In this document: one piece after another, positions 21,501 to 42,300 of the stretch | Layout of the letters: every line of letters begins with the position of its first letter | How positions within the stretch are numbered: the stretch's first letter is position 1 | DNA from: Phallusia mammillata | Lineage: Eukaryota | DNA: 64,000 bases | Direction: 5' to 3' | Assembly: GCA_965637545.1 (NCBI GenBank) | Contig: OZ281497.1 | Location: 12,648,001 to 12,712,000, forward strand | The notes under the pieces: generated by a model | Databases searched by the model: none | Seen by the model: only the letters and a program-made list of their open reading frames with translations | Told to the model about the DNA's origin: nothing | Position numbers and translations under genes: made by a program

Positions 21501-22255
21501 TATTGTATAAACTGAAGTGCAAACTTTTCTGGATCGGCAGATTTTCTGGATCGATTTAAGTATAATTGGTGTTGATATAATTTCTAATGTTGCAGAGACT
21601 GGTCAGGTTGGAACGAGGAAAGTCAAAATTCCGTTTGTTTCTTCTGCGAGTCGTCATTTGACCAAGCGGAAAATGTTTACAATCATATGAAGGTCGGTTG
21701 TGTTATTTTCAATTAATATTCACACGAATTGAAACAAACACTTGTATGGTGTAGTTTTACAAATAACGCTAATCTTGTAGTTTTAAGAATAACCAATTGC
21801 CGCAAACATGTTTTTAGGACGAACACGATTTTGACTTTGTGTCAATCAGGCGTGATATGCAGATGAGTTTTTACCAACAAGTAAAAATGATCAACTTTAT
21901 TCGACGTTTGGTTCACATAGAATTGTCTATGTTAAAAACGGAACCTTCCGAAGTCGCCAAAAACGTTTCGGGCAATATTAAATCATCGACTCAGTGGAAC
22001 CAACCGCAGTACGTGTATTTTTTCAATTCGGCAAAATAAGCACAAATTTGATTTACGCCATGAGTTTTGCTTTTTAGGTATTATTTTCCTACGTACGAAA
22101 ATGACTCACTTCTCTGTCAGCTCGAAGATAAGGACGGTTTATTCGAACCGGAGGACACGTTTGTCATTGGCGAGGACGGGATGGATTGTCGTGCTATTGT
22201 CAACGACAGTGTTTTAACCGATCTTGTAGTTACTGGATATTTCGAAGTGCCCTGA
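586..22255 (+). CDS. ZNF277: Zinc finger protein 277 (C2H2/C2H2-like), multi-exon; 5' end uncertain (in-frame ATGs at 472 and 586, acceptor at 540/541)
   Basis: Hand-spliced exons, all GT-AG and phase-consistent: 586(or 541)-637, 748-916, 1008-1182, 1254-1337, 1579-1651, 2224-2269, 2325-2457, 2519-2577, 21596-21692, 21818-22008, 22078-22255. Peptides match recalled ZNF277 motifs: MILEPLLL, EHKMVVADVKLIADL, YWKKRF, YFLLCDALPED, GNRINLFNHMTEDHNFNIGHPDNIV, LQCLFCEKLFKDRASLREHMRKKAHRRLNPKNKDYDKYYIINYLELGKNW, DWSGW, FYQQVKMINFIRR, YYFPTYENDSLLC. Confidence 0.93.
3632..9525 (-). CDS. TRIM-NHL E3 ubiquitin ligase (RING-Bbox1-Bbox2-coiled coil-6 NHL repeats, Ser-rich tail; TRIM2/3/56/71-like), nested antisense in the ZNF277 intron
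   Basis: Exons (minus): 9525-9006, 8724-8590, 8346-8188, 7478-7350, 7020-6796, 6153-6001, 5427-5210, 5124-4977, 4809-4641, 4502-4398, 4246-4142, 3930-3632, all phases consistent. Domains: C3HC4 RING CQICFETYTRPKSLNCQHTFCLKC...CPTC; B-box1 CDTC...CLDCTDFLCTECSTWH; B-box2 CMIHDGEVAKIYCQSCQCPICHECVECGH; coiled coil; six NHL repeats, e.g. FGAEGPERGQFQGPRGICTDRHDNILVADCWNHRVDIF. Confidence 0.9.
7080..7143. repeat. Short direct repeat in a TRIM intron
   Basis: ATTTATACCCATGTGTAAATA occurs at 7080-7100 and 7123-7143. Confidence 0.7.
14431..14486 (-). CDS. Probable first coding exon of the TRIM-NHL gene (MSDIMNRNLCVLDEEEDDR)
   Basis: Strong donor CCG|gtaagt at 14431/14430. The phase-2 end joins the acceptor at 9526/9525 in frame to give ...DDR-FAGHMMASS. 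A promoter-like motif cluster lies upstream at 14831-15499. Confidence 0.5.
14831..15499. promoter_or_regulatory. Candidate promoter/enhancer: CRE/ATF-type TGACGT cluster and a TATA-like element
   Basis: Near-perfect palindrome ATGACGTAACGTCAT (14831-14845), TATAAATA (15426-15433), and TGACGT at 15439 and 15494, in CpG-rich sequence upstream of the putative TRIM first exon. Confidence 0.35.
16205..16218. promoter_or_regulatory. CTCF-like core motif CCGCCATCTAGCGG
   Basis: Reverse complement CCGCTAGATGGCGG fits the CTCF core consensus CCASYAGRKGGCRS with one mismatch. Confidence 0.3.
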
Positions 22256-22349: not shown

Positions 22350-23522
22350 TGATTTTCAATTAGATATATGTTTGGGTGATGACTTTTCTTTTCATCTTTG
22401 TGTTTGGGGCCCATTTTCTTGTTGATACACAGTATTATTTGATTTTTTCTTTGCTTTTGAAAACTTTGTTCTCTGCTTGACTAACCAGCGCCATTTTAGT
22501 TGTGGGTGTCATTTTCGTACGTAATAAATCGAAAACTTAACTCACTAGTTTTCATTAGAAAATTTATGTTTCATATAAAATCTACACTGAAACTATGTAG
22601 CTACTGTTTAACAACGTAGTTTTACCATCCTTGCAGTGTTTAAATCAAACCAACCGGAATACTGCAGATATTGCAATGTAACAAGGAAACCAATTAATGT
22701 TTCGACTCGTCTTTGTGGTTGTTAATGGCAGTCTCGTGACCCCGGAAATGATGTTTACTTTGGTGAAAAACGATTTGAATTTTGCTTCATCATGACGGTC
22801 ATGTTGCTAATTAGATGTGAACAAAAAATGCGAGAACAAATTCTGGGTACTGCCACATAATGAGGCCCATTTTCTTAACAGAATTCTCAGAAACGCTAAA
22901 TACGGATATGCTGCGCTGATTAATTCATTCATGAAGAAAGGTGTGTTGAACCGTTCGATGTGCAAAATGATGCTACAAAGCAACGTGACGTGACTCAGTC
23001 TGATCTTTACAAACATAATTCATTTTGACAAGCAACGTTCTTGTGTTGTAAACTTCGTTTCCAAAAAGGGTCTACTTGTTTTTAGGTTTACGTTAATGGA
23101 TAAAGCAAACACAAGTCGCGTCGCAAAACTCGAAATTGTATAAAAGTTGTAATTAAATAGAGGCAAAATGTCCGTGCAGCCAAAACACCCTTTGGAAAAT
23201 TGACAATCGCAAAGTGCATTTTAGTCCGCTTTTCCACTTTCCGGGGTTACGTGCCAACAGTCAGTGATGACTTGTCATTTAATTCTCGGTTCGGAACCAA
23301 AACAGTTTTTTTCCGCCATGCAATCGTTCCTCGAACATCACGCATTTTCGCTTCGTCACCTTGCGACAAACAGTCTGGGACGCATGTTCCTAATACCAAT
23401 CTGCTCAAACGCTGATGAACAGTCGCCTCTTGTGCAACGGTTGCGACAATTTCTGTTTGTTAGGATTTTCAGTAAAGAGTGTAGCAAAAATAGAGGTGAA
23501 TTGACAAAGCTGAAACGGGCTT

Positions 23523-24614
23523 ATGGAAAAGATGCAAATGTTGAAAAATGTTTCTAGGCAACATCCATATACTGCAGCGGAGAATACATCTCAGTTACAA
23601 ACATATTTCGTCAATTCAACGATGAATATATCAGAAACAGAACGGAATTTAGAAATACCACTTCTTGTCGCTTCAGCGTTTTTAGCACTCTCGGCATTAT
23701 ACCTTGCAACTGCGTTGTGTTATTACATGAATTTGACAGAAAATCTAAGCTTAGCGAAACAGACGAATACGAAACGTGGTGGTGTTGGTGGCAGTCGGCA
23801 AACAGAGAAGTTCGGAAGGTTTTTGAGATGGCTCTGTCTTGCAACCGCCGTGTTTACGTTGATCATGACGTTGTTTGGATTATCAGGAATCACCGCGTAT
23901 TTTTTTCATGCTGATATGTTGTTTTGCGTTCGTTTTGCAAAGTCACATCACGCGTTGCGTTCGTTTAATGAAATTTTGCTGAATTCAATTTTGTGGCTTC
24001 GCCAAAAGATATTCTATATGCACCCAGCGATGCGACAACTTTCATCTACTATTACCGGGATTGTCAGTTGGCTTTTCTACGCCACAATGATTGTTGCTAC
24101 TCTACTGACTCTAGTGGTTTTCATCGTTGGCGGTGGGGCACACCGAAGCCCTGCAGACGGAATATGTGTTGTGAATGCCATCCATATTTTTAATCAGAAA
24201 TGGGATATATTGCTTCTCGGCATAACTCTGGCACTCATAATCATTTATCGTGTTTTGTTTCTGTCTTTGCTGTTGTATCCCCTCATAAAACATCATCGAA
24301 ACACTTTGCATAGCCGCGACATTAAGACCAACAACTTGATAATAATTATTCGAAGAATCCTGATAGCAGACTGCCTTTGCATCGGCGTTTTTGTAATTGT
24401 AACAGTTCTTAACAACCATCTTTCTAATCAGTCTATCTTTTTGCGAATGGTCATTTGGGAGACAGAACTTATACTTGGATTCATATTTGTTATGTTGTCT
24501 TTCACCGACTGTAGATGTCGGCTATTACCGTTCCTCTTTAAACCTATCAGAATGATAAGTACTAGGGGACAATCATTTACAGGGCGTGTAAGTGTATGGA
24601 GTACCGCAAACTAA
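23523..24614 (+). CDS. Intronless orphan 7TM receptor-like protein 1 (363 aa; true start may be Met at ~23622)
   Basis: Seven hydrophobic segments, N-terminal N-x-S/T sites, Cys at the top of TM3 (LFCVRF) and in ECL2 (DGICVV). Family motifs LWLRQKIFY, LLYPL and SFTDCRCRLLP are shared with the three paralogues. Confidence 0.82.
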   Translation: MEKMQMLKNVSRQHPYTAAENTSQLQTYFVNSTMNISETERNLEIPLLVASAFLALSALYLATALCYYMNLTENLSLAKQTNTKRGGVGGSRQTEKFGRFLRWLCLATAVFTLIMTLFGLSGITAYFFHADMLFCVRFAKSHHALRSFNEILLNSILWLRQKIFYMHPAMRQLSSTITGIVSWLFYATMIVATLLTLVVFIVGGGAHRSPADGICVVNAIHIFNQKWDILLLGITLALIIIYRVLFLSLLLYPLIKHHRNTLHSRDIKTNNLIIIIRRILIADCLCIGVFVIVTVLNNHLSNQSIFLRMVIWETELILGFIFVMLSFTDCRCRLLPFLFKPIRMISTRGQSFTGRVSVWSTAN

Positions 24615-25461
24615 AACTATTTACTATAGGTTATGTCGAAGATTTTTTTTACTGTTGCATGAACACGGTTTAATTCTAAACAACATGGGAGAACAAAAAA
24701 ACATCTTCGTGACTTAACATATAGTTCTGAAGTTTTTAAACCTGTATTTATCTGGCTTTTTACTTTGTATGTACCGTTGCATACAGTTTTATCATCTACT
24801 ATAGAATTGCTTATGGCTATCCTCTTACAAAAGAATCCATTTGTTTTGCTATCCTGTGTAGAAAGTTTGATTTGAATTACTGTTTCAAGTCGCGCATTAT
24901 TTTAATTTTGAAATATGTATTATAGACCAAATACCGATGCAGTCGCTATTTGGATTGGATGAATTACATTTTTTGTGTAACGCATTGTGTATAGTATGTT
25001 ATTGTGAAATATTATTTAGCTATACCATGGTCATGCGACCAATATACGATTTTTAAAGTAGTAGCAGGACTTAAGCGGGTTTCATTGATTTTTTTTAATG
25101 AATTTCTTTTTTCTAGATGTTTTTACGTTTCTCAAAATATGCAAATAAAATTGTTTCTCTTTCAACCGATAAGTTCATTGTGACAAGGGATTTGCTGTCA
25201 TAAAATATTTTTCTAAAACATCCATTATTTGAACTTGAATAATTAAAGAAGAAAAATGTTTAAAAAAAACAGTATAAACGAGATTTCTTTTGGTGTGGAA
25301 CCGTGGATGTGAAGCTAGTTACGTAAAAAATGCTACCCCTCATGAGGTTTTTTTTCCATTTAATCGCGGTAGTTTCCCTAAATGGGTACATTTTATATTA
25401 TTGTTTCCTCTGAGTTCCAACTGCTAATGGAATATTGTTTGGATTGAAAATTAACTGTTAT

Positions 25462-26592
25462 ATGTTCACTATGGCATATGGGTTTCAATGTAGTGGTGGC
25501 ATATGTATTGACCATTATGAATATGTAAGACATGTTTATCAAAAAACGAAAATTTCTGCTCAAGAAGAGTTTCAATCTTTTGGTTTTCAACACACACTAT
25601 TTTTACTCGAGAATCCATACATAAAAACAGCAGTAAGAGACGAAGATGCACCTGATTCATCCCAGAGAAAACCTGTGAGAAAAAGACATAAAAGAAAACG
25701 CAAGTGCCCATTTACAATTGAGGAAACATTGGCGATTGAACTCCATGAAAAGATTAAAGTCAGGCTCCAGGCATCTTATGATGCATTAAGACATGTTGCA
25801 AACGATCATTTTGGCTTTAGAAAATCAGGACAATTTAAAAAGGAACTAAATTTGTTACAGAAAGGAACACATTTTCCTCTTGACAGAATGAATAAATGTG
25901 TCATTTCAAATAAAAGCCCATTTGCGTTGCTAACTAAACATGAAAATCAACAGGTACTTATACCTGCAAACTGCAGGTTTATCGAATCCGATGTTAAAGA
26001 ATTGTTTCTATTGTTGGATGACTGTAAAACGAACAAGATGAAGTTTTCATGTGTACTAATGGACCCCCCTTGGAGAAACAAGTCTGTAAAGCGAGGCTCA
26101 AAGTATGAATGGCTTGATTTTGAGCAAATTAAAAACTTGCCTGTTCCAGCAATGACTCGCGACCATGGAATTGTAGCAGTTTGGGTTACCAACAAAATTT
26201 CAGTGATTAGATTTGTTACTGAGGAATTATTTTCTCATTGGAATGTCAAGACGTTGGGAAAATGGTTTTGGCTAAAAGTAACATCAATGGGTGAACTGAT
26301 TTATCCTTTAGAAAGTTTACATAAGAAACCTTATGAGATGATAATTATTGGGGAGTACTTAAGTAGTACATCCAATTCAATACTGTCATGTAAACACTTT
26401 AAAGAGGAGTATTTTTGCAGTATTCCATGTAAAATTCATTCGCATAAACCACCTATATACAGGTGGCTAGAAGACTTGGCATGTCAAGAAAATCCGCAAT
26501 ATTTGGAAATGTTTGCTCGAAACTTGACATCTAACTGGACGAGCTGGGGTAATAATGTTCTTAAGCTGCAAGACACAAGTTTGTTCAAATGA
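25462..26592 (+). CDS. METTL4: N6-adenosine methyltransferase METTL4 (MT-A70 family), single exon
   Basis: Uninterrupted ORF with catalytic MDPPWRNKSVKR, VAVWVTN, WFWLKVT, HKKPYE, HSHKPP and LEMFARNLTSNWTSWGN, plus a basic NLS-like RKRHKRKRK. The first in-frame ATG is at 25462 (alternative 25471). Confidence 0.92.
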   Translation: MFTMAYGFQCSGGICIDHYEYVRHVYQKTKISAQEEFQSFGFQHTLFLLENPYIKTAVRDEDAPDSSQRKPVRKRHKRKRKCPFTIEETLAIELHEKIKVRLQASYDALRHVANDHFGFRKSGQFKKELNLLQKGTHFPLDRMNKCVISNKSPFALLTKHENQQVLIPANCRFIESDVKELFLLLDDCKTNKMKFSCVLMDPPWRNKSVKRGSKYEWLDFEQIKNLPVPAMTRDHGIVAVWVTNKISVIRFVTEELFSHWNVKTLGKWFWLKVTSMGELIYPLESLHKKPYEMIIIGEYLSSTSNSILSCKHFKEEYFCSIPCKIHSHKPPIYRWLEDLACQENPQYLEMFARNLTSNWTSWGNNVLKLQDTSLFK

Positions 26593-27102
26593 CACATTGC
26601 ATGATTCATTTTTTTCAATTAAATGGTTTTTATATCAAGGCACTTGTTTAAATGGATTAGGAAAGTCATAGAAAAATAATACCTTTTGTACACTTATTTC
26701 AGTCTGCTTTTTTAGACTAAAAGTGTAATAATAGTGTTTTTCACTGCTACTAGCGACATCCACTTCGAACAAAAAATATAGTTTTAGTGTGTGTTAAACA
26801 ATTATGTACAACACATGACCAATCAACTGTTTTACACCTTTCATGGAGTGCAATGTGAGGAAATAAAACACATCAGTTTTAAGTACATTTGTATAAAATT
26901 TACAGCGAGTGTAACAAAAAAGTGACTATAAAAAAGCAATTTTGTTAGTCCCAACGTTGTGTTTTTACACAATTGGTTGTTTTCTTGCCAAACCTTCAGG
27001 TCATTTAAAAACATTTGTTGTACATTTATACATCCAAACCTGGTTCTCTCAAATAGTTTTAGGTTTGGGATAATTTTTTTTCTTGAACATGTTAATCAGG
27101 TT

Positions 27103-28125
27103 TTACGCCACATTTTCATCAACGGTGACGATTTCCGTTTCCGTCGATCGGTGAATGAGGTTCACACGTTTTACAGTCCCAGTTACTTCCCGGGTGTCAG
27201 TCATGCAAGGGTAAAGCCGTGTACGCCAATCAACAAAAGACACTATTATGCAGAATAAAGACATTAACATGTCAAAATCATAAAGTAGTGGACGAAGTGC
27301 ACTGAACGTTTTTGACAGGACGGTTATTGATAATAAACCACAAATTCCGTCAGTGGCCACTGTAGCAATAGCTGCAATGGTAACCCGGCGAATCAGCATA
27401 ATTTCCTTTTTATGTGGGCTCGTTATGTCCTTCATAGCCTTGTGGTGTATGTAAAGAGGATATATTAACAACCCTAACAAGATCACCTGGAACGTCACTG
27501 TAGACAAAAAAAGAAAAAGACCTGGGAGTTTATTCCATATTGTGCTCCAGTCTACGATGCATCCACGACTTGAGCTTGTGTACTTTCTTGTTGCGATGTA
27601 AAGCAAAATTGTAACGACATCAGCGGTGACCATAATAACTATAATTGACCAACTAAGGAAGCGGATAAATTTGTTTACCAAATGTTCCATTACAGGCAAC
27701 TTATAAAACTTTCGCTGTCTCACCCAAAGTACGAGGTACACGCAGGTTATGACCCCCGAATGAAGAACTGCCTTGAATGGTCGAATAACTGCACATGCTG
27801 CAGCGACATTTTGACCGAATGTGATCTCAAATAGTTCACAAATCAAGCGAAGAACCAGCAAAACACTTCCAATTAAGCACAGTTTTCTCATCCAGTCTGC
27901 CAAAGCGTCTTTTACATATCTGGACTGCCCTCTTGATCTTGTCAGGCGCAAACTTTCCTTGTTTTTGAGTTTGACTTTATATTCATAAACACTTAAAGAG
28001 GCAACAATATAGACTACAGCTGTCAATAGGAGAGAACAAATGACGATAGATCCAACAATATACCCATAATAATCGGAATTGTCTTCAGCTTCATGTAGTG
28101 TTTCACCAAAAGTTCCGTTTTCCAT
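27103..28125 (-). CDS. Intronless orphan 7TM receptor-like protein 2 (340 aa)
   Basis: Seven TM segments, AACAVIR (TM3 Cys), RGCIVD (ECL2 Cys), LWVRQRKFY, LLIYPL, SFVDWRTRLYP. Close paralogue of 30365-31384. Confidence 0.85.
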   Translation of the reverse strand: MENGTFGETLHEAEDNSDYYGYIVGSIVICSLLLTAVVYIVASLSVYEYKVKLKNKESLRLTRSRGQSRYVKDALADWMRKLCLIGSVLLVLRLICELFEITFGQNVAAACAVIRPFKAVLHSGVITCVYLVLWVRQRKFYKLPVMEHLVNKFIRFLSWSIIVIMVTADVVTILLYIATRKYTSSSRGCIVDWSTIWNKLPGLFLFLSTVTFQVILLGLLIYPLYIHHKAMKDITSPHKKEIMLIRRVTIAAIATVATDGICGLLSITVLSKTFSALRPLLYDFDMLMSLFCIIVSFVDWRTRLYPCMTDTREVTGTVKRVNLIHRSTETEIVTVDENVA

Positions 28126-29854
28126 CTTTAAATCAACCGAGTTGTGTTATTCTTCTCCTTGTCAACAGGCACAAAACGTTTTTTACTGAGTTTTAAATCT
28201 TTTATGTCTGTAATATAGTTTTCGCCACAAATTTATATTACCTCACGTTGGTGACCGTAATCATAGCCACAAAGTACTTGCTGACTAGCATCTAAAATCT
28301 ATCAACATTATACTGCATGAATGAACGCAACAAGGCTGCGGTAGTTTCCTTGCATCAGAAAGTTGTTTTGGCAGGGACGCGAAATACACAAAAGCTTGTG
28401 AGTGGGAACTGTGCTTAGACCATCGTGTTGTGCGTAATGATATCATCGTAAGTTGTGCCAATGTATCATTGGTGATTGTAGAACTACACATTTTTCTGTT
28501 GCTGTAAAACTATGCTTTGTGGAAGGCACCCAAGCAGTATATCGAGAAAAAACTTGTTTAGCGATGATATGTCACAACTCACAAACCCCGATATTGAATT
28601 TCATTTAACACATCTTCTTGGTGACCAATCTTTTTGTTTACTGCTGTTAACCGTCATCAGTTGCTTCCGGAAAACACCGCCAAGACTAATTATAGCAACC
28701 CAGTCATACTAACACGCAACTAAATGACACCCTTTTCCTTACCTAACCCACAACAAAACTAACGTAACACCGATGACTATCGAATCCCCGAGAGTACCAT
28801 GATTTTTTTAACGTAATACACAGGTGGCACGATCAAGAATCGTCGCTTTTTTAGACGCCTTACTTAACACAGCGTTTTGCAAAGCTTTTAGTACAGGCCA
28901 GCAAAAGGAGACCTCTTTGAAATAGAAAATCTTTATTTGAAGGTTTACATTGTAGAGCTGTTTGCCATCGTGAAACCTAAATACAATAAAATCCCAAAGG
29001 GTAAAATTGATTGTCGCAAACAAACGCATATTTTTGAATGTGTGTTTTGCACTCGTATTTCCCACGCCATTAGAAATGCATCTATTGTTTAATTTTCCAA
29101 TTTCTTTTTGCCCAGTTTTTGCAATATATCACAAAAATAATGTATAATATGATCAAAATCGCAAGGTGGGTAACTAGATTGATTGGAACTTGTGTTCTTT
29201 CGAAAAACAGCTGTCGTTTAATAATATACTCTACGTGGCGCTAAAAATGCGTAGGCCTATAGGCTATGTTAACACTTAACCTGTGTTTCAAAATAGGCTA
29301 CGGTATTGAATATAATAAAAACGTGTTTGGACACTTTATACATTTTTCTGAAGAAATGATCTCATACACTTTGTTTATGTAATAATACACATGTCATTCT
29401 TTTATGCCACTCGCCATGTTTTTTATGTACAAGTTTTATTTTTATTTCCTTGTCGATTTCGGTCTGAAAAGATGGTCGTGACCACGACAAACGTAAGCTT
29501 TGATCACACATGATCGTGCAAACAAAGAAAAATGTTTGTAAAATCGTCGCGATAATTTTCCACAACGACAAAGTGTTTTAAAAACTGTCAACATTATCTT
29601 TGATTTAGTTTTCAACTATTGGCTGAAATAATAAGCATCACTGTCTATGAGTTCAATCTTGTAAAATATGCAAATGTGTGTGAACAGTATTACTTTTTAA
29701 GCACACGTAAAAAGCAAACCAAGATTTTCGGGTTATAGCAGACGGGCAGAAGTTAACACTTCTGGGTACAGAAATTACAATGTAAAAAGCAATAGATGAC
29801 GGACAAATTAATGCATTTGAAGTAAATTTGTACACTGTTAGGGTTGGTCTAGAA

Positions 29855-30082
29855 CAGGGGTTCCCAACCTGTGGTACGCGTACCACTAGTGGTTCGACCG
29901 ATTGATGGACAGTAGACGAAAACCTAAATCTCATTAGGTTTAGTTGTGGTGCTTTAGTTTTATTTCAGTAGGCCAATGTTATTCTTCTGAATAAAATATG
30001 ATTCGATCAAATGAGTTGTTCTGCAAGAAGTGGTACAGAGCGTCCAAGTGGTACGGGATCGTAAAAAGGTTGGGAACTGCTG
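29855..30082. mobile_element. hAT (Charlie-type) MITE, 228 bp
   Basis: TIRs CAGGGGTTCCCAACCT / AGGTTGGGAACTGCTG. Perfect 8-bp TSD GTCTAGAA (29847-29854 and 30083-30090), matching the NTCTAGAN preference of Charlie/Buster elements. Confidence 0.88.
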
Positions 30083-30364
30083 GTCTAGAAGTAATGCTCT
30101 GGAGATGGCGAACTGAAATTTATCTTGTTTTGGCCACGGAGTTAAAATACGAACAGTATCTTTTTTACTTGTCAAAAAAACATTGCCAACCGGTGTGTAC
30201 CAACATTTCTTTTGTGGATGGTTGATAAATTGACTTAAATGACCAATTTATTTGTCAGCAAAATAATGTACAAACAATCCTAGGTACAATGAATTGAGCA
30301 ATACATTTTTTTTTGAATTTTGTACAGCTGTATACATGATGACCAATAATGATAAAAAGGTACA

Positions 30365-31384
30365 CTACATTGCAGTTTCATCTACTCTGTGATTTTCGGT
30401 TTCATTCGAACCCAGGCCTGGCCTCATTCGCCTCACAGTCCCAGCCACTTGTGTGCTTTTAGTCAAGCGGGGATAAAGTCGCATGCGCCAATCCTTGAAT
30501 GAACATATTACGCAGAAAAGCGACACAATCATATCTATGTCAAAAAATATGTGGGTAAGAACACTAAGTGACTGTATAAGCAAAGTGATTGTCATGAGGC
30601 CACAAAACAAATCGGTTAGCACTGCGACAACAGCTGCGATGGTGACACGACGAATTAACAAAATGTCTTTTTTATTGGGATTTCCGATGCCTTTCATTGC
30701 ACGGCGGTGTTTGTAAATGGGGAGTATTAACAAACCCAACAAGATGATCTGAAGTGTTATTGTTGTCACAATTAGCATAAGACCAGGTGCAGCTTTCCAC
30801 ACCAGACTCCAGCCCACGATGCACCCTTGGTTTGAACTTGTGAACCGCACTGCAAAGATGTAAAGCGCAACTCCAACAACAGCCGCAGAAATCATAATTC
30901 CTATTATGGCCCAACTTAAAAAACCGGTACATTTGTTCACCAACGGTTTCATTACTTCTGATGTATACAATTTCCGTTGTCGAAGCCATAACACACAGTA
31001 GAGGCAGGATAGTTGAACTGTTTGCAGAATAACTTTTATTGGTCGAATAACTGCACATATGACATCCAGATCTTGGCCATATTTGATTTCAATAAATTCG
31101 CAAACCAACCGAGGCAGTATAAATATGCAACTAGTTAAACACAGATGTCGCATCCTGTTGGCTGAAATATCTTTTACCAACCCGAACTGCCTTGTACGTA
31201 TAAGTCGCTTGTTCTTTTTGTTCTTGTGGTTGACTCTGTATTCATAAATGCACAATGCGACAACCATGTATAGGTTGACAATTAAGAGCAGAGAGCAGAT
31301 GACGTAGGACAATATCGCTTGTCTTGAATAATCTTTGTTATTCTTTGTCAGTTCTGTGGTTTTGTTAAATTCTTCTCTATTCAT
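30365..31384 (-). CDS. Intronless orphan 7TM receptor-like protein 3 (339 aa)
   Basis: Seven TM segments, VICAVIR, QGCIVG, LWLRQRKLY, LLILPI, SFKDWRMRLYP. Colinear along its whole length with 27103-28125. Confidence 0.85.
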   Translation of the reverse strand: MNREEFNKTTELTKNNKDYSRQAILSYVICSLLLIVNLYMVVALCIYEYRVNHKNKKNKRLIRTRQFGLVKDISANRMRHLCLTSCIFILPRLVCEFIEIKYGQDLDVICAVIRPIKVILQTVQLSCLYCVLWLRQRKLYTSEVMKPLVNKCTGFLSWAIIGIMISAAVVGVALYIFAVRFTSSNQGCIVGWSLVWKAAPGLMLIVTTITLQIILLGLLILPIYKHRRAMKGIGNPNKKDILLIRRVTIAAVVAVLTDLFCGLMTITLLIQSLSVLTHIFFDIDMIVSLFCVICSFKDWRMRLYPRLTKSTQVAGTVRRMRPGLGSNETENHRVDETAM

Positions 31385-33888
31385 CTCAATAATCCTTTTT
31401 AGAAGTTTACAGCAGGTATATACGGGGTATTAACGATAAGTTATGTACAGTGAAACAAGTACCCAGCAGTAAGCAGTTGATATAAACCACCACGTCACTC
31501 CAACATGGTTTGATGCACGAATTTGCTGTTGTAACTTAAAAAATCTGGATTAGAAGATGTAGATTGTAGAAAATGCAGTTTTCTGTACGGATTGGCAAAA
31601 ATTTGCATTAACCGAAGCGTTTTGTTAAGAAGTTTTATTCGAATTGGGCAAAGATCTGGAAAAAAAGAATCCGGTTTAACCGAAGTTTGCTGTATTTCTA
31701 AAATATATAAAGTAAAAAAAGACGAACTTTAGTAAAAAAGGTTATCTATTCCCGAACGCCAAACAGTTGTTGTGGTTTAAAGGAAAACAGAAAGATTTTT
31801 GTAAGAATAACGTTTCTACTGTCACGTTTTTGTTTATGGAACTTTATCCATCAAGTGAGACATCGGAAACCGAAGGCAAGTTGCTTCATAAACGCGATGA
31901 GTTACTGTCCTTTCTGATTTTTCCAGGGATCGTCTTAAAACCCATTTCATCGATCATGCATAAACCAGCCGGATATTCTGGAGTTCAGGCAAACTCTGTA
32001 TGTGTTCTGATTTAATTGTGCTAAATATGCCAAATAGCCTGTATTGATTGCACAGTTGCGGATTTTTTTTATTAAAAAAATCCTTAGCGGTTACTCTTAA
32101 ACTGGGATGTTTGCTTCGTTTGTTTAAAAGTTTACCAACTTGTGCAAACGTGTATTTAAACTCACTGCATGTCACTCTGCGCACGGTGTTACAAGACTAT
32201 AGGGCTCAAGCAACTTGTCTTTTAAAAAAGCGTGATGTTACCAATCAAAATCTAATTTTAATCATCAAGCAAAAATTTTTTTTAACACGCCAGAGCTCAA
32301 AGCTAATATCTAACTGCCGGCTGAAATGTCAGTTTTTCCCCACCAATTTTTAAGTAACACATCATACTTAAATTTTTCGGCGTATTATGAAATCATGAAC
32401 ACAAAATCACTGCCCATATACCCTCTGTCTTCATTATTACCAAATATGCGACTGGTATACCAGCTCCAAACAAAAACCGACCACAATTATGGTTTCACTT
32501 CCTTGAAATCACGTGTGAAGTTTTATTCAATGTTTAACATAAACCTTTTGTGAAGCAATTTTTGTGACCTCAGGTGCGAAAGTTCACAAATCTCCAGAAT
32601 GACTTTCACTCATACATCTTCCATTCTCTTTTTGAGGCTTTTTCGCAGCCAAAAAAATCGTGCATTTTTATTTTAAGAACTATAATGACATAGGTTTTAA
32701 TAAATGGACTGCAATGTTTGTTTGACTCCAACTTTATAATTATTGACCCCTATCAGATTGGAAGTCCGTTTTCAGTGGGTTTAATCTTCCGGTAATAAAA
32801 ATCGGCCAGATATTTTCGGTTGTTTTTTGTCAAACCTTAGCTGCACTCCAAAAACAACCTATGTAATTTGCAGACAACACGGTTGGTGTTTTGTAAAGAC
32901 GATAATTTGCTAATTAATTACTCATTCATTGATTGGATGTTAAACTGTAGATGTAGAGGTTTATTTTATACATAAATAAGTTCGGACCAAATTTCAAAAA
33001 AGTTTGGGCCAAAACCAAAACCAAAATTTCCCAAAAGGCATCTTCGACCGCAATAATTCGAATTTCCAGCCCATTACTAGTGGTCAATTACAAATCAGTG
33101 CAGGATGTGGATACTGTTGTTGCTATGATAAAATAAGATAAATAACATTGCCTGACTTTCGGTTGTGAATCCCGTTATTGTACTTTAAAGCTTATTGCGA
33201 AAACTAGCTAGTGTTTTTTGCTGATGTGAGGCTTACCATATTTGGAAAGTCACTTGCCGATAATTTAGCGCTTGGCAAACAACAAGTGTGAAGTTCAGCT
33301 TTGGCACATAAAACACGGAATATTGATTTGATCAAAGACCTACAGATCCTCATGAAAGTTAGTGTTATTTTCATTTTAAACTTTTGGCTTTAACTATTTC
33401 ATATTCGAATTATTTCATCGACAAGATGGTCTCCATGCACAAAGTAAAATACAATTTATGTTCGATTTTTCGGCAGTACCCAATCGTTTACGGTTTTCAA
33501 AAGTCTGTTGAAGTATAAAAGGCAAACCATAAGTTTGTTCGTGTAGTTTCCATGTTGTGTACGGCACTTTTTGCTCTTACTGCAAAATCATGTTCCTTTT
33601 CCTAAAATGTGGAAAATAATGGCTCGGAATATCTATAGCATTTAGCTTATTGTGTGAACCAAATGGGGGCGCTGCTGAGCAAAGCAGCTTTGAAAGATAA
33701 AAGTGAAAAACGTAAAGTTTTGTTGTTACTCACAGATAAGCCGCATGCACGCGATTGCACTGGGCATATTTGTGCGCTAGTGTTTCTGGAATGTTGTTGA
33801 TACGCAGACTTGCCTAATTAGTGCGTTTTCACGTTTTCTGACAGCTGTATAGCAACTACCTCAACGAATTTTCCCACCAAGTTGCAGA

Positions 33889-35043
33889 ATGTCCACAACG
33901 CAAAGTTACAACTTTACGACTTCAGGTGCAAGTAATGCTAGTCATTATGACTTGACAAGATTTGTAGTCCTTGAAACTACAGTCTCAATTTTCACTCTTA
34001 TCGATGCTTACATCATTTTGTCTTTTCTGGTGTATGAATCCAAAAGACCGAAACGAAGCCGGGTTAGGTCGACAAGAAAATTGAAAGCCAAAGGACAGAT
34101 TTCAACTAGCACGTATGGAAAGTTGATGCGATTGGAAACTTTGTTAGCAGCATTTTTTCTTTTATTACGATATATTTGTGAACATTACGAGTTATTATCT
34201 CAATACGTTGGTTCGACTTCGTATGATTACTGCGATCTGGTGATGAAGCTAAAAATCGTACTTTCCGCGATTTGCCTCTCGCTAGTTTACGGATTTTTGT
34301 GGACTCGTCAAAACTTTTTTTACTCCGACAAATCCATGAAGCATTTGTCATCATGTACAACGAAGATAGTCAGCTCACTGTCCTTGATTTTTATGTTTTT
34401 TGCTGAAATCGTCTGCACCATCTTGTTCACCGTAACGCGATTTTATGTGATGACTCCCACTGGTTGTTTACTGACGCGGAGCACAATCCCAGATTACATC
34501 GCCTGGGTATGCCTCACTATTTCTACCGTTGTTTTCCAGGGCTTATTGTTTGGACTGTTTATTTACCCAATTCTACAGCATCGTAACGTGATGAACTCAA
34601 ACACAGCTCGAACCAAGAACTTTATGCCTCTTATTAAAAGGGCCACTGTGTCAGCAGCAGTTTGTATTTTGTCCGATATTTTAGGATCACTTCTCATCCT
34701 TTTGGTCAAAGACAGTCACAACATCGTACCTACACTGGTGTACGACTTCAGCATCCTGATTAATGTGATAAGTTTGATCGGTTCGTTTCGCGACTGGCGC
34801 CCACGGGTATGTGCATTTAGTGTTTGTGCAACAGATTGGGTACGAAAATCTGGTGACATCTCGGACTGTGAAACCTCGGGTTGGAGGCGTTCAACTTTTA
34901 ACAGAAGTGTATCAAGACCAGCAGAAACTGTTCCTGATACAACTGTGTGGTCAATTACAAGTTCTCAGAAGTCAAACCAGTCAAATGAACAACAACCCAA
35001 TGGGGTTTACAGCAATTTTTCAAACGTCGACGAACAGTTGTGA
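33889..35043 (+). CDS. Intronless orphan 7TM receptor-like protein 4 (384 aa) with Ser/Thr-rich C-tail
   Basis: N-x-T/S sites, seven TM segments, YCDLV (TM3 Cys), TGCLL (ECL2 Cys), LWTRQNFFY, LFIYPI, SFRDWRPRV. Acceptor-like TTGCAG lies immediately before A-ATG. Confidence 0.85.
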   Translation: MSTTQSYNFTTSGASNASHYDLTRFVVLETTVSIFTLIDAYIILSFLVYESKRPKRSRVRSTRKLKAKGQISTSTYGKLMRLETLLAAFFLLLRYICEHYELLSQYVGSTSYDYCDLVMKLKIVLSAICLSLVYGFLWTRQNFFYSDKSMKHLSSCTTKIVSSLSLIFMFFAEIVCTILFTVTRFYVMTPTGCLLTRSTIPDYIAWVCLTISTVVFQGLLFGLFIYPILQHRNVMNSNTARTKNFMPLIKRATVSAAVCILSDILGSLLILLVKDSHNIVPTLVYDFSILINVISLIGSFRDWRPRVCAFSVCATDWVRKSGDISDCETSGWRRSTFNRSVSRPAETVPDTTVWSITSSQKSNQSNEQQPNGVYSNFSNVDEQL

Positions 35044-36355: not shown

Positions 36356-39300
36356 CTACTGTCTGTGGTACTGCACGTGGTTGTGGGGATTGATGATGTT
36401 CAATCGCTGTTGCTTGCGACGTTGTTCTGTCACCTGATCTTGTAGGTCCTGCATATTTTTTAACATAGATATAAATATAAAAATCGGTAGTGTATGGAAT
36501 TATACAAAAACAATGAGCTGTCAATAACGCCAAAAAACATTTTAGTGTTTTTTTGCGGCATCCGTAGTAATTTAATTGGAGTCTTTGTAGAGGGTTATTC
36601 GGCATCGCAGCGTCATGTTTCTCATTTGAAACGAACCCGCACGCTTTTAGCATAATCAAATACCAAATCAGTTTTGTACATATTTTGACATATCCTCATG
36701 TGAATTAAAGCATAACGTGTGAAGAGTATGCACATTTTTGGCCATCTTTTACACACGTACATGTCATAAATATCTCGCAACATCACATGCAATGTTATAT
36801 GTCAGGTTTATTTGCACATACAAAGTGCATCACTTTCGTTGCCATAAACAGGGGTATATACAGCTATTTCCTATTGACTCGACATTTATAATGTATTATT
36901 TACAATTCACTGTTCACTTTGTGGTTTACTAGGTGTTGGGAGTCGGCAATTACAAAATGTAGCAATAAATATAAACTTGCCTGCAGTTGTCTGGAGAGTG
37001 TGTGGACCAAATTTGAAGTGCTGTCAAGTTGGAGAAGCAAACTCCGCATGTCGTTATTTTCCACAGCTTCATCGTCAGCGGCAAGTGACATCGCCTGCAT
37101 CCGAGGAAACCATTCCAGTTTTCCGAACTAAAAATTAAAACGAAACAAGGTAAGTTGCAAAGCTGACAACCAATATGATTGATGAATTCATTATTCATGC
37201 AGATACAAATTGCCGTCACAAAATACCATACACTCAGTTATTATTTTATCTGCAACACTTGCACCACAAAATCCGCAAAACTACCACGTACGACCCAACA
37301 AGTCAAGATGACGATTCGTGTGTGAGCATAACATAACAATAATCGCATTAGCAAAGCAGATCGGTTAAAACGCGTCGCTGCCATGAAACTCACCTTGACT
37401 TGGTTGTAGACGTAACTTTCCGGACCTGTAAACTCTGTCGAATCTTTTACTTTGACAAGCACGATAAAGTAGAGATAGTGCCACATGTTGTGTTCTTCCT
37501 TCACGTGCGTTTCGAACGACACAGTTTTGTTGTCAAATGATTTCCTTTCCAACCCTGTAGAAGATTACATAAACAATTGCCCCGTGTTACACGTATTTAT
37601 TGCAGGTGTTTTTCGTTTTTACCGACTTTTTCAACGTTTTGTTTGATTTTACCTGATAGATTTTTCAAGGTTACTCAAATTTCTGTATAGTAAATCCACT
37701 ACATCTAACCACAAGAAAAACATACCACATATGAAGCATGTGTTTTTCAAGATATCGTCCTTCTGTTGCTTCTCAGAACGCAAATCAGCAAAAGTGTCGA
37801 TAATTACACCGAAGATTAGGTTGAGAACAATAATAATGAGGATAAAGAAAAACAACAGATCGTAAACCACCCTTCCCATAAAAAGAAGACCTTCCTGTAA
37901 AAGAAATGTAACGAATGTCCACATAATGAACTTAAATAAAAATCCTAAACTTTATTGGAAAAAGAACGCGAAGTGGTAAAAATGTGTGCATCAAATTTTT
38001 TTTACAGTAAAAATTTAACCGAAGTTACTAGGGATGTGCCAAAATTGCAAATGTTCTGTTTGGTCGAGCACCGAGCATCTCACGTTAATGCTCGGTGCTC
38101 GGCCGAGCACGCTCGGTGCATTATGACGTCACAAAAAAATCCCCTTTCTACGTTTTAGCTCTGCAAGGCCTCTTACGTCACCAGCGGTGTATTAAGCTGT
38201 TACAGGCCTCAAAAGTACACGTTTTTCCACAATCTAATACATTTGAAAAATAATTTGTTTTTGTTCATAGACACCCTTTCGAACACTAGTTACCTATGTT
38301 AGCAGGGCATGAATATGCAAATTTAATGCTCGGGTCAGTTTGTGCAACTGCTCGGCCGAGCACCGAGCATAAAAAAAAAGCGATGCTCGGTACCGAGTAC
38401 TCGGGTTCTGGCTCGGCTCGGCGCATCCCTAGAAGTTATCACAATCTGCTTTTAGTTCCCAAAACAAGTGATAACAGCTCCGATATTTACTGACCGATTG
38501 TGATGGTTTTCGAAGAATGTCACCAATCCCACCACCGTTCCGCAGCCCCTCATTCAGTGTGGTAATAATGCACATGAGCAGGGATTCGCAGTGATTCTCC
38601 TCCACAGATTCGCTTCCATCACATAAATACCTTTCCAGCACCTCACTCGACACACGGGACGCGAAATCCGATGTGTTTTGTTGTGTTTCATTCACGGGAA
38701 GACTCCATAGATTTGCTACTGTGATTAAACATACAGGGTATAAGCCATGGAAAATATAGGTAGACAGCACATACATTGATCTGATTTAAAATTGGGTAGA
38801 CGAATAACTTAAAACGTTTCAAAACGGTCATATTTGCATTGAATTATAGAACTTACATTGCAAATATGTCTACAGGCTTTAAAAAAAAACAGATTAAAAT
38901 ATGGCTGGATCCACTTCAACACAGCTTGGGGGACGTTTTTCATATGGTTGCTTCCTATATTTTCTAAATTTACAAACTTGCTTGAGGTATAACTTTGTAA
39001 CTTCACTAACCGATTTTTTGAAAAAAACTTCTCTGCTGTTTGTACACACGTAAATAACAGAAAAAGCAAATTGGCGCATTCAGTTTTGACTGATTTGTCA
39101 CGGAAGTAACGTCACTACATGAAACAAGTGCTTTTGTAAACACATCGATCACGATGTTTAATCAAAGGATGCTGAAAGTTAACGTCCCAACCCGTATTGT
39201 TGCAACTTCCATCATCTTGTTGACAAACTTGTGCGTTTCGAATCTGTGTGTCCAACTTCTCCTTGAGAGCTCTCAGTTTGTCGGGGTCATCCGTTACGCA

Positions 39301-42300
39301 ACGCGGGTTCACGCTTACCTTGAAGTCTTGTTTCAGGAAGAGATAGCCGACAATGCTGCAAGGATAATAGATAAGTTAGTTATATAACAGATCCAGGGTT
39401 GTCATGAAATTAATAAAATATGAAAGCAAACGGAATACATCTCGGATCAAGCCTATCATTTTCCAAGCCATTTGGTATTTGGTCAACACAACGAACGTTT
39501 CGACAAACAAAGACACACAGCAATATGTTTTGATTCACAGTACTTGGTCGAAAACGTGATGGAAAATGTGCCCTAAAAATGCGAAACGTGCCAATGGTAC
39601 TTAATTCAGTCGCATTTTATCTCGAAGCTGGCTTCCTAATACTCACGGGCCTAACAAACGCGGTGTGCATTTACGATTTCAACAATGTCCCTGTCTAAAC
39701 GTTACAAATTGAGAGGTCAAATGCGAAAGTATTCCCATTCGACAAATGCCAAAGCTAAGGATCACGTGATCACTTGATCACGATTACTAAAGGTTGTCCG
39801 TAAATATTGTGGCGAAACGTGCACAGACGGAGTGACATTGTAAGGTGTGTCGTTATATGCAGCATGCAGATTTTATAGAAGAAGAAAGAGGGCAGAAGAA
39901 AGGTTGGCGTGGTTGGTTGTAGTGATGCAGCAAATATTGGGCAATGTTTTGGTTTTAACCCAAACTACTTCAAATACAGCCGAAATTTCTTTAACACGTG
40001 AAATCAATTCATAAAGTTTTGCGACCAGGAAATAAAATTTAACTGTCCAACTATTTAATGTACCGTGTCACGTTCTCGGTCAACAATAAGATTTTTGTGC
40101 GGCTTGTTTAACACAAAATGTGTGTGGTAGTGTCGCAAATGAGTTTATTTGCATTAGCACGCTATGACTATTTCACATCTATTAAGTTTTATGGTTCCGC
40201 TTCGGCCGAATAATCGTTTTTGGCACGAATCTTGTAAGACAGGTTCGGTGCATAGCTAGTTGAGTGTTATATACATTTTACCTGAATATGTAGACAAGTA
40301 TTAAAGCCAGCATCGCAGTGAGAAGTAGAGAACGAACATTCCTCGTTACACTTCGAATCACATTCAACAAAGTTTCCTCCCCATAAATCAAGTCGAAAAA
40401 CTGAAAACGAAATGTTTGTGTAATTATATATTGAACTAACCAATAAACATTTAAGCAAAATTTTGTTGTACTTTACACCTACAACAACATAACAAACGTA
40501 AAACTTGGTTACTATGTATATCGTGTGTAATTTCTACATCCAACCCAATAGGTGGTCGTCTTATCCCGTTTTCAAAACTGTAAAAAAACATTTCAGGATA
40601 ATATATTGCATTTACCAAAATACTGTAACACAGTTCGTCCCAGAATAATCCCATAAAACAGAACATTATGTGGAAGACGTGAAGAATGAACTGGGATTCG
40701 AACAGCATTTGAAATATTCCTTTGTCTTTCATTCCCTTATTACCGATGTAACTCAAGAGATAGATGAAACGATTCAGCAGCTGAATAAAATAAATAGGGA
40801 TTTATAAACTTGTCCATTCTTTCCCACCTGTACTAAAATGTAGTTTGACGAAATATAAAAAATAAACAGATCCATTCGTACTTATCTTAACATGGATAAG
40901 GGTATCTTACGTTTAGAACTCCAAGCATGAGAAGAGCGTTCTGCACACCAACCCAGAATATTGTTTTCACCATGACGCATAGCGCCAGACATCTGACAGC
41001 AAATGGATTTGAGATGGCAGCAAGTGAAACCAACATGATGGGCCACAACAAAAGATGGACCTTATCACTCCAAGCTAAAAGTGAGTTATATGTTGAATGC
41101 TGTAATTATGTGACACGCAAGGACGGATATTCATACACCAACCTTTGTAGTCGACAATTTTGAATGGATAAAACAAAGCCACAAGCAGGTTGACAATAAT
41201 GATGAAATTTGTTGAGATTGTGCTCCACAGCGAGATGTGACGACTGAACCAATAAAGACTCTTGAATTCTTAAAAAATAAACTTTATTGCGTAAAAATCA
41301 TAGGAAAATAATGTCAAGCCAAGCTTTTAGACCCCCTATAGTTCTTAGACGAGTTCTGCGTCAATTTCTACAAATAACTTCAACTGTATCGAGTCACACA
41401 TGAATAAATTACGTTAATACCTCTCATTTTTTTCTGCCACACCATCTCCCTGTACATATCCTCAACTTGTGAAAAGAAGTTGCCCACTTTACTTCCCTGG
41501 TCGTCTCTGTCGGTTGTGTTCCAAATTCTATCCATCGTTTCACGGGTCAAATAACTGCACACATGAGGCACGGGAAAGACAATTTGCTCCATGGTTCGGT
41601 CCGCTCGCACAATCTAGAGATTAAACTCAATATTTTATTTCGTTGGCATAAAAAAAATTAAATTGTCCCAATCTTGCACAGCTAATACAACTAAATCGAA
41701 ACAATGGCTAGAATATCGGAACTACGATTTGACTTGTTTGTACAATAGGGTTATCTTGACAAGACACCTGCCACCAGATATGACTTATCGCTTACTCATT
41801 TATCCTAAGCATGGTGGGGATTGGAATGTTTGGCAACAAACATTATGTGAAGGAAAGGTGATGGATATGCTTACCAGACAAAAAAGTGGCAAGACAATTT
41901 TGCTAACCTACACGCCGCACTTTCACGAGAACTATTCGTTTCTGTTGGGCAATAACATAAAGCGAGATGTTTCGCTGAGTCAATGCTGAATGTATAATGT
42001 CAGTAAACATTACTCCACGCTTGCAACCTATCATGCGGTAACTCGTAAACACTGCTTACAATCAATCCGTGACTCATAACGCGCTACGACGCCAACGGAA
42101 ATCCCCTCCGCAATCGAGAAAGCAAAGGAAACCGTCAACGTTTTGATTGCGTCATAACTCATAACCCCTATGACATCAGACGTACCTCGATCTGCGCGGT
42201 GTGTTTCTTGTAATACTGCAGCGCCTCTGTGCCGGAGAGTGAGTTGTCAGGTCTGAGAGCTTGTGCGAGAGCCTGGTTGTGTTTTGCGAGCTGATGAGCA

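Follow-up and report, generated by a model that had tools for sequence, protein, structure and literature searches.

A cluster of four intronless genes in Phallusia mammillata probably encodes divergent GPCR-fold receptors of a large tunicate family

In a 64,000-nucleotide stretch of the genome of the sea squirt Phallusia mammillata (GenBank assembly GCA_965637545.1, contig OZ281497.1, positions 12,648,001 to 12,712,000 of the forward strand; this whole stretch is referred to below as the window) we analysed a cluster of four intronless genes, here designated R1 to R4. We consider it likely that R1 to R4 are functional genes for cell-surface receptors with the G-protein-coupled receptor (GPCR) fold, and that they belong to a large tunicate family whose members are divergent enough to have escaped classification. 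That family would represent a GPCR fold that has diverged past sequence recognition from every described GPCR class. The four genes, in window coordinates, are the following.

23523-24614, plus strand: R1, single-exon open reading frame (ORF) of 363 amino acids; predicted seven-transmembrane (7TM) receptor, R1 subfamily.
27103-28125, minus strand: R2, single-exon ORF of 340 amino acids; R2 subfamily.
30365-31384, minus strand: R3, single-exon ORF of 339 amino acids; tandem paralog of R2 (50% identity).
33889-35043, plus strand: R4, single-exon ORF of 384 amino acids; R4 subfamily.

A preliminary description of this DNA, made from the letters alone, had proposed four single-exon ORFs of 339-384 amino acids at these positions; the coordinates proved to be exact and the ORFs intact. 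The same description had assigned seven transmembrane (TM) segments to each product, and indeed hydropathy analysis resolved seven hydrophobic segments in each of R1 to R4, while both AlphaFold models presented below contain seven helices. Regular-expression checks also bore out the motifs that had been described, with LW.RQ..[FL]Y and SF.D[WC]R.R present in four out of four proteins, Y/L-P ending TM5, and the canonical motifs CWxP, NPxxY and [DE]R[YFH] present in none of the four. (In R1, for example, the motifs read LWLRQKIFY, LLYPL and SFTDCRCR.) The N-terminus of each protein carries N-x-S/T sequons, four of them in the case of R1, and the C-terminal tail of R4 is longer and rich in Ser/Thr. 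Note that in the window, whose G+C content is 33-44%, only 14 ORFs reach 120 amino acids or more, and the only ones longer than 230 amino acids are R1 to R4 and the MT-A70 ORF described below; the scarcity of long ORFs argues that R1 to R4 are not chance ORFs. The four proteins are mutually paralogous, with pairwise identities of 23-32% apart from R2 and R3, and a tblastn search of the 64-kb window found no additional receptor copy or fragment. The ratio of nonsynonymous to synonymous substitution rates (dN/dS) for paralog pairs was 0.47, 0.44 and 0.22 (the last for R2 versus R3, a saturated comparison with a dS of 1.7), which suggests that the receptor proteins are under constraint.

We compared R1 to R4, together with a set of 105 family members, with known protein families. 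A Pfam scan of R1 to R4 returned no family, and 7tm_1 (PF00001) was unmatched even at E<=1. Nor did the 105 members have a Pfam family in common; there were scattered weak matches to 58 families, each confined to one member, among them 7tm_1 (5.6e-5), Sre (7.3e-4) and Srd (3e-3), and ten longer members gave no match at all. Two profiles and two individual proteins were used to search the PDB by sequence; no match was a receptor and none had an E-value below 1, and the profile of all 105 members found no receptor there at E<=10. (One member from Clavelina is named in UniRef by virtue of the PROSITE family 1 profile.) The nematode Srg, Sre and Srd profiles were unmatched by R1 to R4.

A relationship with the TAS2R family was considered because TAS2R14 tops the structural lists given below, and because a stretch at the end of TM5 in TAS2Rs, L-L-I-x-S-L-x-K-H, is similar to that of the family studied here. 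TAS2R (PF05296) was not among the Pfam families of the 105 members in the matches listed (25 of the 58 weak families). Moreover, none of the published TAS2R hallmark motifs (NGFI, LAxSR, KIANFS, LLG, PF, HxKALKT, YFL and PxxHSFIL; 10.1101/2020.10.23.348706) occurs in the family consensus or in the list of conserved positions. The family was not placed among the TAS2Rs, given the absence of the hallmark motifs and a structural lead of TAS2R14 of about one Z unit.

An initial AlphaFold model, that of R1 from four sequences only, contained seven helices but had a predicted local distance difference test (pLDDT) score of 66.5 and Foldseek E-values of about 0.01, and was too poor for classification. 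The model of R2, which was built on the 105-sequence alignment, reached a pLDDT of 89.3 and a predicted template modelling (pTM) score of 0.88; it contains seven helices, a beta-hairpin in extracellular loop 2 (ECL2; residues 180-194) and, behind TM7, one further short helix. The ECL2 hairpin and a short helix 8 are present in both models. Structure prediction followed by Foldseek had been put forward in the preliminary description as a check, and it returned a GPCR-like fold: all 32 PDB matches of the R2 model at E<=1e-3 are GPCRs, mostly class A receptors for peptides, chemokines and complement, with GABA-B in addition. The best E-values lie between 5e-5 and 1e-3 (the top matches being C3aR, SSTR, FPR, NTSR and chemokine receptors), with TM-scores of 0.43-0.52 when normalised on the model and 0.46-0.62 when normalised on class A targets.

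Alignments made with VIA-align gave Z values of 14-17.5 against Ste2, TAS2R14, mGlu/GABA-B and class A receptors. In an unbiased ranking the order was Ste2 (17.5), TAS2R14 (17.1), a designed GPCR-like fold (16.8), mGlu1 (16.0), TMEM87A (16.0) and AT2R (15.5), and in a second ranking TAS2R14 reached 17.5, class C about 16.5 and class A 16.1; according to the tool's own note, a gap of about one Z unit is a tie. The R2 model is thus about equally far from classes A, C, D and T, and no class leads the structural ranking. A shape search of the ESM Atlas returned the family's own cluster at a TM-score of 0.71, followed by 7tm_3 and 7tm_1 clusters at about 0.6. (The R2 model also contains a small cytoplasmic beta-sheet that is unusual for a GPCR, in which a strand at residues 70-72, in the basic intracellular loop 1, pairs with a strand at residues 318-320 in the C-terminal tail; the two strands correspond to about 27166-27174 and 27910-27918 of the window, minus strand, and the tail strand is a V-G-T-V-K-R motif that is kept across the R2 subfamily.)

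The residues that the family conserves most strongly correspond in part to those of class A receptors. Positions conserved in at least 90% of the 105 members (R2 numbering) are Y39 in TM1, C111 at the top of TM3, L133, W134, R136 and Q137 at the bottom of TM3, Y141 in intracellular loop 2 (ICL2), S158 in TM4, C189 in ECL2, L219 and P223 in TM5 (P223 in 100%), R247 at the start of TM6, and F297 and W300 in TM7/helix 8. The cysteine pair between TM3 and ECL2 noticed in the preliminary description is conserved at 97% (C111) and 99% (C189), and C189 sits in the second strand of the modelled ECL2 hairpin; by alignment and model, the two are predicted to form a disulfide equivalent to the class A pair of C3.25 and ECL2. 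In class A receptors C3.25 and R3.50 are spaced by 25 residues. Arg136, conserved at 92%, lies 25 residues after C111, and 93 of the 105 members have the TM3 cysteine, an arginine exactly 25 residues on and the ECL2 cysteine. Because this spacing equals that of C3.25 and R3.50, we place the W-x-R-Q motif at the site of the DRY motif, with the arginine at 3.50 retained and both the acidic residue at 3.49 and the aromatic residue at 3.51 replaced.

The density of Lys plus Arg is 0.21 in the inner loops versus 0.09 in the outer loops, and 96 of the 105 members have an N-terminal sequon; both the charge bias and the sequons place the N-terminus outside. The arrangement is that of a GPCR, namely a seven-helix bundle with the N-terminus outside and the C-terminus inside. 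The conservation score was higher in the inner halves of the helices (0.472) than in the outer halves (0.331; Mann-Whitney p=8.6e-8, 105 members), with ICL2 the most conserved loop. Such a pattern is what would be expected of receptors with varied ligand pockets and one common intracellular partner.

To define the extent of the family, a profile of nine sequences was scored against 1.84 billion representatives of clusters formed at 50% identity. Matches at E<=1e-3 came from 1,097 clusters; 824 of them passed E<=1e-10 and 155 passed E<=1e-30. The family is thus large but bounded, rather than the fringe of the much bigger class A superfamily. We sampled 30 clusters from the top 150 matches, and each of the 15 that carry a name is tunicate (Clavelina, Styela clava and Ciona intestinalis, which we take to represent three ascidian orders); the closest ESM Atlas clusters also carry the label Chordata. 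On these 30 sampled top clusters, the family so far appears, by sequence, to be confined to tunicates. A word search with the window proteins retrieved, at 42-52% identity, Clavelina lepadiformis and Ciona intestinalis proteins labelled 'uncharacterized' (the Ciona members include LOC113474457 and LOC144745713). A word-based homolog search with the 105-sequence profile gave only five matches, since transmembrane words are unspecific, and the edge of the family was not visible in it. The hallmark strings of the family occurred in none of the 169 sequences of the Ciona GPCR set published in 2008, in which the control strings DRYLA and NPIIY were present, and a literature search for the NCBI LOC identifiers of the family found no paper in the collection searched. 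The suggestion that this is an uncharacterised, large tunicate family thus agrees with its position outside Pfam, outside the solved structures and outside the published Ciona GPCR catalogue.

The neighbours of the four genes allow the age of the cluster to be assessed. In the window, tblastx gave matches to ZNF277/TRIM-NHL and to IP3R, and the neighbouring genes are the following.

About 21560-22250: 3' exons of ZNF277 (tblastx).
25359-26884, plus strand: MT-A70 (METTL4-like) gene, single-exon, between R1 and R2; ORF 25435-26592; Pfam MT-A70 at E=1.1e-34, with a DPPW motif.
36359-47000, minus strand: IP3R gene (tblastx), with its 3' end near 36359, tail-to-tail with R4.

A maximum-likelihood tree joins R2 and R3 as sisters (support 95) within a clade of 23 rows that also holds a Ciona gene and a separate all-Clavelina subclade (support 100); it places R1 in a clade of five rows (support 100) and R4, with a Clavelina gene, in a clade of nine rows (support 97). 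R1, R2/R3 and R4 represent three deep subfamilies. The closest relative of R1 is Clavelina LOC143460339 (40% identity), which likewise adjoins a ZNF277-like gene; R2 is 52% identical to Clavelina LOC143460335 and 48% identical to Ciona LOC113474457; and R4 is 43% identical to Clavelina LOC143460832 and 45% identical to the sequence P0014. In Clavelina a ZNF277-like C2H2 gene comes first, an R1-type gene next, and after these a run of at least six R2-type copies, of which one is frameshifted; the R4-type gene is tail-to-tail with IP3R as it is in the window, and all annotated Clavelina copies are single-exon. The conserved microsynteny involves L003:1-4171 and L004:12119-21191 of Clavelina. Because this arrangement is common to the Phallusia window and Clavelina, it presumably predates the split between the two lineages. 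(The MT-A70 gene had no match in the Clavelina cluster stretches examined.)

These findings speak against the young, lineage-specific burst that had been suggested for the cluster, as for each of the R1, R2 and R4 types there is a counterpart in Clavelina beside the same neighbour gene, a pattern that suits conserved receptors no less well than environmental chemoreceptors. The picture of clustered, intronless 7TM genes stands, but that of uniformly 'fast-diverging' recent duplicates does not, with R2 and R3 the only sisters among three deep subfamilies. A change in copy number was seen in the R2 type only (two copies here versus at least six in Clavelina, in species-specific clades), whereas the R1 and R4 types are apparently single-copy at the loci examined and conserved in position. 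The cluster is therefore old, and birth-and-death is limited to the R2 type. Between species the receptors are 40-52% identical versus mostly 60-95% for the true-frame ZNF277-like and IP3R matches, so the receptors have diverged beyond their flanking genes. Single coding exons, tandem arrays and lineage-specific gain and loss, the architecture of vertebrate-type chemoreceptor genes, are all found in the family.

Several further observations were made on the relatives of the cluster. The Clavelina ZNF277/R1 and IP3R/R4 pairs, which are contiguous in the window, lie there on one chromosome with protein accession numbers about 570 apart. One R2-type copy of Clavelina (L003:12508-13484, minus strand), for which no gene is called, has its frame split at about 12936 and represents a pseudogene or else a fault in the assembly. 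The Clavelina protein P0167 (CAK8688686.1, 505 amino acids), in which a C2H2 zinc-finger part is apparently fused to an R1-type receptor, probably reflects a fusion of gene models; it shares one 90% cluster with a RefSeq model of 351 amino acids that consists of the receptor only. On L005 (ENA contig ctg8688_16x_l) the paralogs P0004 and P0005, which are 89% identical, lie about 60 kb apart, and P0005 is flanked on both sides, at distances of up to 10 kb, by genes for a hAT transposase, a ZBED-like protein and a reverse transcriptase/endonuclease; the duplication may be linked to mobile elements.

Transcript contigs from four runs of four studies (three guessed to be RNA and one of unknown kind) were compared with positions 23400-29399. 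Contig coverage was limited to 25359-26884, that is, to the METTL4-like gene, which was covered as one unspliced piece. (One contig over this gene has an unmatched 5' end of 18 letters, which resembles an oligonucleotide used for template switching in cDNA synthesis.)

Taken together, the sequence and the model would be consistent with the following mechanism. A short, glycosylated N-terminus would lie outside the cell, and a disulfide from the top of TM3 to the second strand of the ECL2 hairpin would shape a ligand pocket whose walls are the variable outer helix halves. Binding of a ligand would then be passed to a strongly conserved cytoplasmic face composed of W-x-R(3.50)-Q-x-x-F-Y (TM3/ICL2), Y-P-L-x-K-H (the end of TM5), I-K-R (the start of TM6) and S-F-x-D-W-R-x-R (TM7/helix 8), and this face would engage a single shared transducer, which is most likely a heterotrimeric G protein. 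The set in the window comprises one member each of the old R1 and R4 subfamilies plus a recent tandem pair, R2 and R3.

A number of results weigh against functional receptors of GPCR type. Most class A microswitches were not found in the family, namely the conserved N in TM1, the D in TM2, CWxP and NPxxY; in place of the class A anchors there are Y39 in TM1, R93 in TM2 and S158 rather than W in TM4, while the residues seen in TM6 and TM7 are D259 and N289 (in 66% of members, with no proline). The likeness to solved GPCRs is modest (TM-scores of 0.45-0.6), and the VIA-align Z values exceed those attainable by unrelated helical bundles by only a few units. Within subfamilies, the difference in substitution between outer and inner positions reached significance for a single pair out of five, and we base the distinction between inner and outer halves on the family-wide gradient only. 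Coupling to G proteins we infer solely from the conserved cytoplasmic face. Finally, no contig of the four runs lies over R1 or R2 (R3 and R4 fall outside the region compared), although contigs cannot prove silence. The lack of contigs would also fit pseudogenes or ORFs with no present role; however, four intact ORFs of 339-384 amino acids in DNA of about 37% G+C, dN/dS values below 0.5, motifs conserved over three ascidian orders and 105 sequences, and preserved synteny make this exceedingly improbable, and we reject it on the basis of dN/dS and conservation. Non-GPCR 7TM proteins, on the other hand, also align with the R2 model at Z values of 14-16 (TMEM87A at 16.0, AdipoR2 at 15.2 and microbial rhodopsins at about 14-15), close to those of true GPCRs, and the feature neighbours of the family among named Atlas clusters are fungal DUF7703, THH1/TOM and Ste2, all at only 0.82-0.85. 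Together with the missing class A switches, these values would suit a 7TM protein that acts without a G protein and shares only the bundle with GPCRs (of the GOST/TMEM87 or PAQR kind, or a transporter or scaffold). We think this improbable, as the TM3/ECL2 cysteine pair, the arginine spaced as at 3.50, the hairpin in ECL2, helix 8 and an N-terminus outside are hallmarks of GPCRs, the Foldseek matches at E<=1e-3 are GPCRs without exception, and the few database hints (weak Pfam matches to 7tm_1, Sre and Srd, and the UniRef name) point the same way.

If R1 to R4 are indeed divergent receptors with a GPCR fold, their ligands could be endogenous or environmental. Environmental chemoreception is plausible as one possible role of the family as a whole, because the family is large, intronless and tandem, undergoes species-specific duplication and is variable in its outer half. 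Endogenous ligands fit about equally well, because the four genes are old and conserved in position and because the ECL2 hairpin is as in peptide receptors. The idea that the receptors serve endogenous ligands (peptides, lipids or hormones), with conserved orthologs in conserved physiological roles and a family size that mirrors many tunicate-specific signalling molecules, we entertain tentatively: the R1, R2 and R4 types keep Clavelina counterparts with the same flank (ZNF277-like by R1, IP3R by R4), R1 and R4 are apparently single-copy at these loci, and the ECL2 beta-hairpin and the top Foldseek matches recall class A receptors that bind peptides. Against this stand the low between-species identity relative to the ZNF277-like and IP3R neighbours, the gain and loss of R2-type genes in tandem, the very large size of the family and a dN/dS of 0.44-0.47, which by our own estimate looks high for a hormone receptor. 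That the family is instead the environmental chemoreceptor repertoire of tunicates, filling the gap left by absent OR, TAAR, V1R and T2R genes, we regard as possible but doubtful. The tandem, intronless arrangement and the contrast between outer and inner halves would suit such a repertoire, as would the presence of TAS2R14 among the top structural matches; however, no contig covers R1 or R2, the four genes are old syntenic orthologs, the TAS2R hallmark motifs are missing and the structural ranking is tied among classes.

Tunicates are the sister group of vertebrates. They lack OR, TAAR, V1R and T2R genes, and their chemoreceptors are unidentified according to review articles and to a 2026 paper on taurine chemotaxis in larvae (PMC2396169, PMC7776563, PMC12922724). 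With its GPCR fold and its position outside Pfam and the Ciona catalogue, the family supplies a concrete set of candidates for this question. Were the chemoreceptor reading true, the family would be expected to include receptors for larval settlement cues and for siphon chemosensitivity, an outcome we rate as rather unlikely. Whatever its role, the family merits a dedicated profile model for use in annotating genomes, and it shows how far a GPCR can drift with only the TM3/ECL2 disulfide and Arg3.50 kept.

Because defining features of class A, of TAS2Rs and of the nematode serpentine families were looked for and not found, we have not filed the family under any of these, and it is not assignable to any described GPCR class. 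Ste2, of fungal class D, has the highest Z of the unbiased search (17.5, with a root-mean-square deviation (rmsd) of 3.7 A over 253 residues) and is an Atlas feature neighbour at 0.82, but it has no sequence similarity to the family, the two are taxonomically very far apart and the Z is tied with those of other classes. Nematode Srg, Sre and Srd are likewise large, fast-evolving and clustered 7TM families beyond the reach of the 7tm_1 model, and the ESM Atlas automatically names the family's own cluster 'Serpentine receptor class gamma'; however, Sre and Srd are matched by only one of the 105 members each and by none of R1 to R4, and the nematode genes are intron-rich and not known outside nematodes. 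TAS2Rs are similar in being intronless, arranged in tandem clusters, about 300-340 amino acids long, short at the N-terminus and without class A motifs, and TAS2R14 aligns with the R2 model at a Z of 17.1-17.5 (rmsd 3.8-4.2 A, 259 of 285 residues). They differ in their hallmark motifs, which the family lacks, and the Z lead of TAS2R14 over classes C and A, at about one unit, is a tie; TAS2Rs are also not known to have the TM3/ECL2 cysteine pair, which the sea-squirt family has. In comparison with class A, the family has no 7tm_1 match, no N1.50, D2.50, D/E before the arginine or W4.50, and neither CWxP nor NPxxY, and it aligns with TM-scores of about 0.45-0.6 and Z values of about 15-16, whereas two class A receptors would be expected to match far more closely. 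What it has in common with class A, and especially with the gamma-group peptide and chemokine type (C3aR, SSTR, FPR, NTSR), is a 7TM topology with the N-terminus outside, the TM3/ECL2 cysteines with a hairpin, an arginine 25 residues after the TM3 cysteine, helix 8 and a conserved inner face. We read the fold as GPCR-like and the family as a probable distant branch of the rhodopsin-like clan.

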